The notes under the pieces were generated by a model. It was not told the origin of the DNA, searched no databases, and was given only the letters and a program-made list of their open reading frames with translations. A program made the position numbers and the translations under genes. From Trichoplax adhaerens (taxonomy: Eukaryota > Animalia > Placozoa), in the NCBI RefSeq assembly GCF_000150275.1, contig NW_002060945.1, positions 6,073,246 to 6,137,245 of the forward strand: DNA of 64,000 bases, read 5' to 3'. Shown here piece after piece: positions 59,729 through 64,000 of the stretch (positions are counted from its first letter, which is position 1; each line of letters begins with the position of its first letter).

Positions 59729-62700
59729 ATGGTTAGTCTCCAATCTTTCCATTATGGTGTAGAAGATTAAAATTGTTAATCAAATATAAATTATTTTAGT
59801 AAAATCGGAATTTTTAAGACTTTTTTAAAACGTTAATTAGTATATCCATGTCCGTAGACTTTTTCGATATATGAGTGTCTGGGCGTAGTCCGATGTACTG
59901 TAGTCAAATTTTAATAGGATAAAAAAATTTCCGATTAAGGTAAAATTAATTACTACCTGTTTTTTATCTGTATCTAACAATTTAATCTTCATTCTTTTTA
60001 TTCATGGTTTAAAAACATCATAGGGGAACTATACACTCGATCAGGTAGATAAAACTGTATTTCTTGCTATTAATTCTGACCGTGATTGAATGAATTGAAA
60101 TTTTTTTTTCCTAGTTCAATGTAAAGTTAACTAGATTTTTAAATCATATTAGGTGCGTTCGGTGATGGACAAAAAGCACAACATTCGAAATATGTCGGTT
60201 ATAGCAAAGACCGAAGAGGGAAAGTCGTCTGTAGTAGATTTGCTTATGAGCAAGGCTAGTGTTGGTGTTGATACTAAAGATAACCAAGAAAGCCCTAAAA
60301 AGGCGATGTAAGTAGGGTTTGCAATCCGTCAGAATTTTGTTACTATTCTGCTAGTGCACCATTTATACAGTACTACATATATCCTACATTCTGCGAATTT
60401 TCCTCTGAATATGATTGTGCTCTTAAAAAATATTCTATAATATTGCCTGTTCTAGTTTTATTGATTAACATTTATGTACGATAAGTATAGTTCAGTGTGA
60501 TTCGACAGTAACAGAACGAATTTTACTGCGTACTGCAGTGCCACACCTACCGTTGTCTGAAATTACTTTAAAGTTTATTTAATTAATTGTAAAAATTTTA
60601 CTATCCTGTTTTAACATACGTGGCTTAGACTGCAATGATGCATTCCTATATGCGCGTATTATTCAGCACAATTCGTAAATAGTATTGTATTATCCTTAAA
60701 AAACGACGGATAATCTTAATGGAGAGATTTAATAAAATTCGTTTATTACAATATACAGTTTTTACACCGTGTGGTACCGGATAATTTGGATAGACCTAGA
60801 TTCAATTTGTGAATTTTAACTATCCGATCGAGTTATTAGTATGGTTCTGTTGTAATCCTACTTTATTACACTAAGCTTAGACAGATACTTCTAAAATCGT
60901 GCAAACTATTTAGATTCTAAATTTTTGTTATCCGATAAATAGGGCTAAATCACTTCATTATACATTATCTGACCCAGATATGGCATATCTTTCCGGTCAA
61001 GGAAATGATGGAAATAATTTTCTTTTCAATTTGATTGATATGCCTACAAATCTTGACTATTCATCGGGAATTGAAGCAGCGCTTCGTGCTACAGATAGTG
61101 CTTTGGTAGTTATCGACTGCATTAAGGGTTAGTTTATTGATTTTTAATACGTTATTATAATGCGATGATGAATTTAAATTAAAATACTCTTCTTTAGCGG
61201 ATTTGAAAAATTGAAATTATTTTAATTATGATAATGAGGATTAATTTTGTTGAAATGTCGTGGAAAAATCGATTAATGACTCAAGGCTACCTATTTTAAT
61301 TCAGGTGTAAGTGTACAAACTGAAACTGTTTTACGTCATGCTATCAGTCAGCGTGTAAAGCCTCTCTTGTTTATGGATAACATGGACGAAGCTTTATTGA
61401 AATTAGAGTTAGACAATGAAAATTTGTATCAGACGTTTTGCCGTATTGTTGAGAGCACAAATGTAATCATCGCTACTTATAATGATGATGATGGACCGAT
61501 GGGAAATATTCAGGTTAGTGGTAATTTTCTTGGTTATTTGTTGACTTGATCATCTGTAGAATTTATTTTTGTATCTTATAAAGGTTGATGCAACAAAAGG
61601 CACTATTGCCTTTGGCTCTAGCTCACAAGGTTGGGCTTTCAGCTTGAAAGAATTTGCTGAAATATACGCTGCTAAATTTAAGATTGAGCCTCAGAAACTT
61701 ATGGTTCGATTATGGGGTGATCAATATTATAGTCCAAAGGAGCGTAAATGGAATAAAACCGGCGGCAGTGGTTATGTTAGAGGATTTAACCAATTTGCAC
61801 TTGATCCTATCCAAATGGTATATGATTATATAAGTTAATTGTAACTGTTACTGCATTTTATATATCAGATCTTCTCAAATTGGGGTTTTAGATTTTCAAG
61901 AATGTAATGAAATCTCAAAAAAATGTATATGAAAAGTTGCTGAAAAAGCTTCAAATTAAGTTGTCATCTGAAGAAAAAGTAGGCCTACATATAGTGTCGC
62001 ATCGTAAAGTATAGTTTTCGGGGTACAATATATTTTTACGTTTTTTAATAAAACTAGAAAAAGGAAGGAAAAGCGTTATTGGATATAATCATGAAGAAAT
62101 GGCTGCCTGCTGGGGACACTTTGTTAAAGATGGCAAGTATTCATGTGCCTTCACCTGTTACTGCACAAAAATACCGCATGGAAATATTATATACAGGTCC
62201 TCATGATGATCCTATTGCTCTTGATATAAAAAATTGCAATCCAAAGGTTAGATACAATAGTAACTTGATGGCATACCGGTATGTTTACCAACTAATAAAA
62301 TTGGATTACGTTCATTTACAGGGACATTTATGTATGTATATTTCAAAGTTGGTACCTAAAAGCGATGGAAAACAGTTCTATGCCTTTGGTCGAGTCTTTT
62401 CAGGCACAGTCGGTACTGGACAAAAGGTTCTAATCATGGGTCCTAATTTTGTACCTGGAAAAAAAGATGATTTACATCAAATAGAAATTCAAAAGTAATA
62501 TTGAATATAATCATGTAGAAATCATGAGAATTTATTTTACTCAAGTAATATTGACTACTCAACGTTTTCGATATATTTAGAACTGTTTTGGTGATGGGTC
62601 GTTGTATTGCATCAATTAAGAATGTACCATGTGGTAACATTGCTGGTCTTGTTGGAGTTGATCAGTTTTTAATGGAAACTGGAACGATCACTACGTACGA

Positions 62701-64000
62701 TAAAGCTCATAATCTGAAGGTTAACTGATTTAGATTAATATTGCATAATTGGATAAAAGAATATCACATAAATAAATTTAAATATGATTATGATCGTAGA
62801 TGATAAAGTTTTCTAAGTCGGCTGTTGTACGGATCGGTGTCGAACCAAAGGACCCCTCTAATTTGCCAAAACTTGTAGAAGGACTTAAACTTCTTGCAAA
62901 ATCCGATCCTACGATTCAGGTAGTTTCTATTTTTATCCTGTAGGGCACCATTATAAGTTACTCTGGTTAAAATAATATATTCTGTATCATGATATTATGA
63001 TCGTGATTTTATTCTGGTTACTTTTTTAGTGCATTATTGAAGAAAACGGCGCTCATGTTGTCACTGGTAGTGGAGAATCGCATTTAGATACTAGCTTGAA
63101 AGAGTTAGAGAAGGACTATGCTGGCATTCCGATCAAAGTATAAAATTACCATTTAATTTTTATGATTGATTACGACTGCATTGCCAAAGCTGGTGTAATT
63201 TATGCCTTTATAGAAATCTGCTATAACAGTATCGTATAAGGAAACAGTTAGCAGCAAATCAAGTCAGACGTGTTTATCTAAATCTCCCAACAAACACAAT
63301 CGTCTCTTTATGACAGCGCAACCTTTCCCTGAAGGATTGGCTGAGGATGTTGAGAATGTAATTTAGCAGTTATATTAATCTATGGTGGTTGTTTTCGCTA
63401 ATTTTTTTAATATGTAATCGTATAGACGCGGATACGAGACGTAAATTCAATTCTCTACATTTATCTTGAGTGATGTATGTATTACTTATTTTATTTTTAT
63501 AGCGTAAAGTTACTCCAGAACAAGACTTCAAAGTTAGGGCTAGGTAGTTATTATGATATATGACTCTCTGCTATATAACTATGGTTGAAAAATGTTGACA
63601 TAGAGTATGTATCTTTAGATATCTAGCCGATACGTACAAATACGATGCCGGAGAAGCACGTAAGATTTGGTGTTTTGGTCCTGAAGCTAAAGGAGCCAAT
63701 TTTCTTATTGATACGTCAAAAGGTGTACAATACTTAAATGAAATTAAAGATAGTGTGGTTGTTGGTTTCCAATTGGCTACGAAAACGGTATACGCATACT
63801 TTGTAGTTCTGCTGTTGTAATATGACCAATAATCAATTCCTAATATCAATGATAATCACAAAATTTCTCGAAGGGCGTTTTGTGTGGAGAAAATGTTCGT
63901 GCTGTACGTTTTAACATCAATGATGTTACATTGCATGCTGATGCTGCTCACCGTGTTGGTGGTGAGATTATTCCAACGACTCGACGTTGTTTACATGCTT
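59729..64000 (+). CDS. Divergent elongation factor 2 paralog with degenerate GTPase motifs; 3' end lies outside the window
   Basis: Exons 59729-59731 (ATG only), 60024-60044, 60153-60307, 60943-61127, 61305-61513, 61584-61817, 61892-61978, 62058-62246, 62322-62494, 62581-62719, 62800-62919, 63030-63137, 63214-63357, 63503-63543, about 63620-63787 and 63874-64000+. There are no stops or frameshifts. eEF2 signatures are [82 protein letters not shown] and DVTLHADA. Confidence 0.93.

Follow-up and report, generated by a model that had tools for sequence, protein, structure and literature searches.

The window analysed in this work is a stretch of 64,000 nucleotides (nt) of the placozoan Trichoplax adhaerens (contig NW_002060945.1, C1412:6073246-6137245), taken from a 105.6 Mb assembly of 1414 contigs with a GC content of about 33%. 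Near its right-hand end begins a gene, here called copy A, which encodes a paralog of eukaryotic elongation factor 2 (eEF2) and is followed in tandem by a second, canonical eEF2 gene (copy B). Copy A belongs to the eEF2 family by its domain order, by its full-length identity (67%) and by its grouping in a protein tree; it is an intact, transcribed gene in which the GTPase motifs of eEF2 have been rewritten to different degrees.

The tandem eEF2 genes

Copy A extends over positions 59729-64570 of the forward strand, with 18 exons, 828 codons and a coding sequence (CDS) of 2487 nt, its 3' end lying 570 nt past the end of the window (the sequence from there on was read from the contig stretch L003). 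According to the transcript splice joints and to a splice-site check, all of its 17 introns are of the GT..AG type and there are no internal stops; the frame stays open past the window edge with no frameshifts, and the only insertions or deletions relative to copy B measure 39 nt and 3 nt, both in frame. The initial annotation had described frame and splice sites as intact over 16 exons, and had pointed to the part beyond the window as a place where disruptions might appear. The intactness holds over all 828 codons, on both sides of the window edge, but the exon number has to be raised to 18, a count which includes exon 1, made up of the ATG alone, and the 21-nt exon 2. The exons of copy A are as follows.

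59729-59731, + strand: exon 1, the ATG alone, followed by a GT donor; covered by the contigs of runs X5 and X6
60024-60044, + strand: exon 2, 21 nt, encoding GNYTLDQ (counterpart in copy B, VNFTIDQ)
60153-60307, + strand: exon 3, with the P-loop (G1) AKTEEGKSS at 60204-60230, canonically AHVDHGKST, and the shortened switch I; splice joint seen in four runs
60943-61127, + strand: exon 4, with G3/switch II reading DMPTN at 61037-61051, canonically DSPGH
61305-61513, + strand: exon 5, with G4 reading DNMD at 61376-61387, canonically NKMD
61584-61817, + strand: exon 6, with G5 reading GSSSQGW, canonically GSGLHGW; the eEF2-specific insert begins here
61892-62919, + strand: exons 7-11 (61892-61978, 62058-62246, 62322-62494, 62581-62719, 62800-62919), remaining insert, domain II and first half of domain III, placed by splice joints and Pfam fragments
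63030-63787, + strand: exons 12-15 (63030-63137, 63214-63357, 63503-63543, 63619-63787), second half of domain III and early domain IV, including the SPNKHN loop
63874-64056, + strand: exon 16, with the domain IV tip (a stretch of 11 residues); the window ends within it, at 64000
64136-64268 and 64377-64570, + strand: exons 17 and 18, beyond the window (post-window part, L003:5136-5570)

The intron between exons 8 and 9 (62247-62321, 75 nt) is in frame and without stops, so that a naive scan for open reading frames (ORFs) gives one frame of 146 residues there.

Copy B is a canonical eEF2 of 840 amino acids with all motifs intact, located at the window-equivalent positions 68354-73162 (L004:1354-6162), its start being 3.8 kb downstream of the copy A stop. 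Its ATG also stands alone in a micro-exon (68354-68356), in the same layout as in copy A, and the two genes share the same 17 intron positions, have identical exon lengths in 16 of 18 cases, and have introns which can be aligned along the entire gene (72% identity). At the protein level, copies A and B are 66.9% identical, and their identity to vertebrate eEF2 is 61% and about 81%, respectively. A genome search with the domain IV exon returned A, B and one distant EF2-family locus (41% identity) only, and the genome has no eEF2-type locus besides A and B. The initial annotation had made its reading depend on the existence of a separate canonical eEF2; copy B is that gene, and copy A is not the sole eEF2. 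The distant locus (C1412:9563183-9566795, - strand), whose 41% identity refers to the domain IV exon of copy A and which has a strong GTP_EFTU exon, is probably Snu114 or EFL1.

The similarity between the two copies also extends to their 5' regions. Over the 3' part of intron 1, the 21-nt exon 2 and intron 2, copy A (59960-60263) matches copy B (68622-68927) at 72% identity, and upstream of both ATG micro-exons there is, by eye, a similar stretch with a shared ttccaacgaag motif, which points to a duplication in which promoter-proximal elements were copied along and then kept. The codon bias of the two genes shows no notable difference (effective number of codons 45 in A and 48 in B).

The expression of copy A, which the initial annotation had left to be checked, is borne out by transcript contigs from four runs, belonging to four studies, aligned to L003:700-5600 (one of these runs, X13, is recorded as RNA-seq and is labelled with a different organism). 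In each of the four runs one contig, 2748-3085 nt long, represents a fully spliced copy A mRNA. The identity of these contigs to the window is 99% or more; 15 of their joints are listed as GT..AG, and one joint listed as AA..AT becomes GT..AG when shifted by 2. Shared sequence words suggest that the locus is also present in runs under three organism labels, two of which (labels A and B) were covered by the spliced-contig alignment.

GTPase motifs and domains of copy A

The motifs of copy A were compared with those of its tandem neighbor, copy B, and of 11 vertebrate eEF2 proteins. In G3, the glycine of DxxG has become threonine and the catalytic histidine has become asparagine, and in G4 the NK of NKxD has been replaced. 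Switch I has undergone a net loss of 13 residues, the threonine of the CITIK sequence (G2) is without a counterpart and, in the alignment, the position of the main target threonine of the eEF2 kinase is absent, although the residue-by-residue pairing within this gapped stretch is uncertain. The P-loop still matches A-x4-G-K-S, and the G4 aspartate, which contacts the guanine, is retained. The initial annotation, which had proposed that every G motif is rewired, was therefore accurate in its readings of G1, G3, G4 and G5, in their coordinates and in the shorter switch I, but overstated the case for G1, because the A-x4-G-K-S pattern is kept. The intact series G1-G5 of a functional eEF2 translocase is not found in copy A (the DxxGH histidine and NKxD are lost), and neither are the two switch I threonines (that of G2 and the one targeted by the eEF2 kinase).

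The extent of these changes can be appreciated by comparison with the rest of the protein and with the rest of the family. Among the positions which are deeply invariant (that is, invariant in the 11 vertebrate eEF2 proteins and in copy B), 13 of the 25 motif columns are changed in copy A, against 130 of the 519 other columns (Fisher p = 0.005). On the three G-core exons, the Pfam GTP_EFTU model gives 17.8, 25.4 and 17.5 bits for copy A, all below the cut-off of 26.5 bits, and 61.9, 49.1 and 34.1 bits for copy B; the values for exon 3 are 17.8 and 61.9 bits, respectively. When the G3 exon was searched against 1.84 billion representatives, DSPGH was found in the ten best or fuller-length proteins of the 150 listed, the sole departure among those ten being DSPDH, in one duplicated artefact.

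In translational GTPases, activation of the hydrolytic water on the ribosome is the task of the switch II histidine, the gamma-phosphate is sensed through the DxxG glycine and the switch I threonine, and recognition of the guanine depends on NKxD. Given that copy A has lost all of these elements, ribosome-stimulated GTP hydrolysis by its product is very unlikely, whereas nucleotide binding would still be possible, since the GKS of the P-loop and the G4 aspartate are kept. It is conceivable that copy A encodes a working translocase and GTPase, namely a subfunctionalised second eEF2, a reading with which the complete five-domain architecture, the A-x4-GKS P-loop and the retained G4 aspartate would agree. 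Nevertheless, we regard it as most improbable: the switch II histidine and the DxxG glycine are replaced by asparagine and threonine, the switch I threonine region is deleted and the NK of NKxD is gone, the need for the switch and NKxD residues is known from translational GTPases generally, and GTP_EFTU is below its cut-off on every G-core exon. At the sequence level, copy A has what is expected of a pseudo-GTPase, in which the fold is kept and the catalytic motifs are lost.

Based on exon-level Pfam matches, copy A has the five domains in the eEF2 order (G, II, III, IV and V), including EFG_IV and EFG_C. The scores are 27.3 bits for GTP_EFTU_D2, 19.4 and 16.2 bits for EFG_III, and 26.0 and 26.6 bits for EFG_C, and EFG_IV is over its cut-off both on exons 12-15 (35.7 bits) and in the part from exon 16 onwards (33.5 bits). 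Domain IV keeps the SPNKHN loop and the diphthamide histidine, and the C-terminal LDKL is also kept; the 11-residue diphthamide loop of the window strain differs from the HADAAHRGGGE found in run X13. In total, copy A is changed at 143 of the 544 deeply invariant positions. When these columns are grouped by exon, the changed fraction is 38% in the G core, 32% in domain III, 24% in the eEF2 insert, 21% in domain V, 19% in domain II and 14% in domain IV, and the excess in the G core and domain III over the remaining regions is significant (odds ratio 2.4, p = 1.2e-5). Contacts to the small subunit, to the decoding centre and to the stalk base are made by domains II, IV and V. The claim that the losses are concentrated in the G motifs, with domains II-IV preserved, is right in direction, but none of the domains "stays close" to eEF2: the overall identity to copy B is 67%, and 14-24% of the invariant positions are lost outside the G core and domain III.

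Origin of copy A and selection on its sequence

In a maximum likelihood (ML) protein tree, which took in eEF2 sequences and was built without EFL1 and Snu114, copy A falls inside the placozoan-type eEF2, in a clade (99/98 support) with copy B and with L020, a contig from another sample in the Logan collection (SRR30664515, 908 nt), which serves as a close placozoan outgroup. The branch of copy A is about nine times longer than that of copy B (0.57 against 0.06). L020 covers exons 5-8, has canonical motifs and aligns with copy B through the introns (77% identity). The intron distances (0.39 for A-B, 0.51 for B-L020 and 0.59 for A-L020), with which the synonymous branch lengths concur, place the duplication, on a rough clock and barring gene conversion between A and B, later than the divergence of the L020 species. 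When more distant sequences (L021/L022) are used to root A, B and L020, the exon sites resolve no order, with 11 derived states shared by A and B, 20 by B and the outgroup and 11 by A and the outgroup; a sister relationship of A and B is favoured by the distances in introns and at synonymous sites. The sequences L021 (Logan, SRR28326078) and L022/L023 (ENA, ERZ25072448 and ERZ25070844) correspond to compact eEF2 genes of about 3.5 kb, which the tree joins with the Trichoplax copies (95/95). In the 4.5 kb upstream and the 2 kb downstream of the L022 gene no second eEF2-like ORF was called, and in a synteny test its flanking ORFs had no match around the Trichoplax eEF2 locus.

The protein databases were searched exon by exon (the queries being exons 4 and 6 and the open frame over exons 8-9), and the joined CDS was used for codon counts, alignment and tree only. 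These exon-level searches returned canonical eEF2 fragments, with canonical motifs in all of those inspected, and nothing similar to copy A, in collections which lack the window's own exon ORFs, so that the blank does not show that orthologs are absent. A search with a chicken eEF2 isoform returned vertebrate eEF2 only, and these sequences were used as outgroups.

The selection acting on copy A was analysed through the ratio (omega) of nonsynonymous (dN) to synonymous (dS) change. In an ML three-branch codon model with L020 as outgroup (241 codons, exons 5-8), omega is 0.36 for A, 0.24 for B and 0.07 for the outgroup, and neutral evolution of copy A (omega = 1) is rejected on these exons (likelihood ratio test 11.9, p = 5.5e-4); the initial annotation had taken a ratio close to 1 as the sign of a pseudogene, and its expectation of a lower value is borne out here. 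Parsimony with the same outgroup gives 61 nonsynonymous and 32 synonymous changes on the A branch, against an expected proportion of 3.8:1 (ratio 0.50, binomial p = 0.0016). A whole-gene branch model with the distant outgroup L022 was rejected, since it is non-identifiable (omega of A 1.2, with the outgroup branch saturated at 11 substitutions per codon). Parsimony with the distant outgroups, which under-counts synonymous change and hence inflates omega, gives 46 synonymous changes for A and 43 for B, and 228 and 36 nonsynonymous ones, respectively. Copy A has been under purifying but relaxed selection, and it has both of the properties, expression as mRNA and purifying selection, that are expected of a retained pseudo-GTPase. 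Regarding copy B, its branch omega (0.24 against 0.07 in the outgroup) and its 30 own residue changes at positions where copy A keeps the vertebrate state indicate that both copies may have relaxed after the duplication.

The main rival reading is that copy A is a decaying duplicate, transcribed from the parental promoter, functionless and on its way to becoming a pseudogene, in which case the open frame would reflect past constraint and a short time since full relaxation. We consider it unlikely, yet serious enough to be weighed in full, since several of the observations fit it. Relative to vertebrate eEF2, copy A has 195 lineage-specific residue changes and copy B has 30 (relative-rate chi-square 121), and the altered 143 of the 544 deeply invariant positions are a further sign of decay. 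The pairwise comparison of A and B over the whole gene (dN 0.21, dS 0.51, omega 0.41) indicates weak constraint, and omega on the A branch would be about 0.6-0.7 if the synonymous change were split evenly. The per-domain comparison, which the initial annotation had proposed as a check, gave a pairwise omega of 0.34-0.51 in every domain, meaning that omega is raised and constraint is loosened throughout the protein and not in the G domain alone. The window differs from X13 at 7 nonsynonymous and 4 synonymous sites, a ratio indistinguishable from neutrality (with few sites), which may be read as continuing decay. At 5 of the 7 nonsynonymous sites the other strain has the copy B residue, so that it is the window strain that is derived, and among the derived changes there are two at sites invariant in all the eEF2 sequences compared, Q133H and G687V, the latter being a glycine to valine change in the diphthamide loop, beside the diphthamide histidine, found in the window strain only. 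Additionally, no orthologs of copy A were found outside the Trichoplax-labelled runs, by which a conservation of the altered motifs across species could be recognised, and the copy A contigs, being assembled, speak for presence and splicing and not for expression level or for the ranking of A against B. Taken as a whole, these points weigh against a functional pseudo-GTPase, and the constraint on copy A is perhaps still relaxing.

Other observations are difficult to reconcile with a decaying duplicate. The 828-codon ORF is open at a nucleotide divergence of 22% between A and B, without frameshifts and with 17 of 17 introns of the GT..AG type. In neutral simulations, with copy B as the starting sequence and substitutions drawn from the observed spectrum, the share of sequences free of stops was 10% after 50 substitutions, 1% after 100, and 0 of 4000 after about 336, which is the estimated number of substitutions on the A branch. 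At P >= 0.05, neutral substitutions would amount to at most about 50-60 of these approximately 336, and the comparison of the open frame with the simulation argues that, over most of the history of copy A, selection maintained its reading frame. The omega of A is significantly below 1 on exons 5-8, and the strain variants pooled over the runs (8 nonsynonymous, 7 synonymous) deviate from neutrality (binomial p = 0.046). Across the four runs, only one difference falls in a G motif, a synonymous one at G202 in X13. The losses are domain-specific and a full-length mRNA is present in four studies; the features by which an unprocessed pseudogene is recognised (broken frame, lost splice sites, silence) were not found in copy A.

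A possible role for copy A and its relatives

Considering these data together, copy A is probably, and we hold this view with moderate confidence, a lineage-restricted, expressed (as mRNA) pseudo-GTPase derived from eEF2, encoded by an intact gene that arose as a tandem duplicate. In the proposed course of events, the eEF2 gene would have been duplicated in tandem, with copy A found so far in the Trichoplax lineage only, and this copy would then have lost the machinery for ribosome-stimulated GTP hydrolysis. The G core and domain III, which couple GTP to movement, have suffered the most losses, and domain IV, a tRNA-like arm extending to the decoding centre, the fewest, followed by domains II and V. 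With domains II, IV and V better preserved, the likeliest activity would be binding to the factor site without GTP-driven cycling. The copy A protein may thus still dock at the factor-binding site of the ribosome, devoid of the GTP-driven translocation cycle and presumably blind to the eEF2 kinase, acting as a passive ribosome occupant, either as a preserving or silencing factor or as a competitor of canonical eEF2. The roles put forward in the initial annotation (hibernation factor, translation brake or toxin decoy) are likewise hypothetical.

A more specific version of this proposal is suggested by analogy with the canonical protein, since SERBP1 is known to sequester eEF2 on inactive ribosomes (PMC6226290). 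Copy A could be a dedicated, GTP-independent "parked eEF2", which would escape the eEF2 kinase and silence or preserve idle ribosomes, possibly acting together with a factor of the SERBP1/HABP4 type; we consider this version reasonable but doubtful. The genome contains a single alpha-kinase locus (C1381:135796-136474, - strand), likely the eEF2 kinase, and a weak match to the HABP4/SERBP1 family (C1405:2322410-2322496, + strand, 25.7 bits), which are possible partners in eEF2 regulation.

Alternatively, the new role could lie off the translating ribosome, with copy A serving as a decoy for toxins that target diphthamide or for the chaperones and modification enzymes of eEF2, or as a partner in another complex, in the manner of Snu114 in the spliceosome. 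The retention of the diphthamide histidine and of the SPNKHN loop in the best preserved domain (IV) would suit such a role, and non-translocase paralogs do exist in the EF2 family, namely Snu114, EFL1/Ria1 and the archaeal aEF-2p (PMC4342817; PMC6143161). We consider such a role improbable, given that no specific non-ribosomal partner is indicated by the data, that the ribosome-contacting domains II and V are preserved about as well as domain IV, and that the window strain has newly altered the glycine beside the diphthamide histidine.

The comparison with known systems helps to situate a putative eEF2-derived pseudo-GTPase. Copy A resembles canonical eEF2 in the five-domain order, the 17 intron positions, the diphthamide histidine, SPNKHN and LDKL, and differs from it by the rewritten G3, G4 and G5, the partly rewritten G1 and the switch I shorter by 13 residues. 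Snu114 and EFL1 keep working GTPase motifs. Like copy A in the proposed reading, Snu114 (EFTUD2) and EFL1 (Ria1) are eEF2 duplicates which moved from translocation to another task, but they are older than the last eukaryotic common ancestor, and Ria1 is apparently universal in eukaryotes (PMC4342817), whereas copy A is young (dS of 0.5 to copy B), lineage-restricted and dead in its motifs. The archaeal aEF-2p, encoded by a second EF-2 gene beside a bona fide EF-2 and judged to be a non-translocase (Narrowe et al. 2018), keeps G1-G5 and loses the diphthamide and SPHKHN loops of domain IV (PMC6143161); copy A is its mirror image, having lost the G motifs and kept the domain IV loops. The degenerate septins are pseudo-GTPases (PMC10731463), and such proteins share with copy A a GTPase fold in which the catalytic or nucleotide-binding motifs have decayed; as proposed for copy A, they remain in use as scaffolds or regulators. 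A survey of the family describes divergent, species-specific eEF2 duplicates in protists and leaves placozoans unmentioned (PMC4342817), and in the full-text literature we found no description of the copy A gene or of any eEF2-derived pseudo-GTPase.

eEF2 is among the most conserved eukaryotic proteins, with essentially invariant G motifs. If the "parked eEF2" version is true, copy A would be the first pseudo-GTPase derived from eEF2 that regulates translation. As an expressed copy in which the G motifs were dropped and the ribosome-facing domains kept, copy A is a natural separation-of-function allele. It could reveal roles of eEF2 which do not require GTP hydrolysis (hibernation, competition, A-site protection), and could show a route by which a motor protein becomes a pseudoenzyme. 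If copy A is instead a slowly dying duplicate, it would provide a well-dated case of the persistence of a transcribed and intact copy of a core translation gene.

Among the sequences collected during the searches there are also ten short contigs with eukaryotic eEF2 (L010-L019) that are recorded as parts of bacterial assemblies (Microbacterium, Paracoccus, Alcanivorax, Gordonia and others). One of these, L010, carries an intronless full-length eEF2 which is 80% identical to the Trichoplax protein, and the ten contigs look like eukaryotic contamination of bacterial records.

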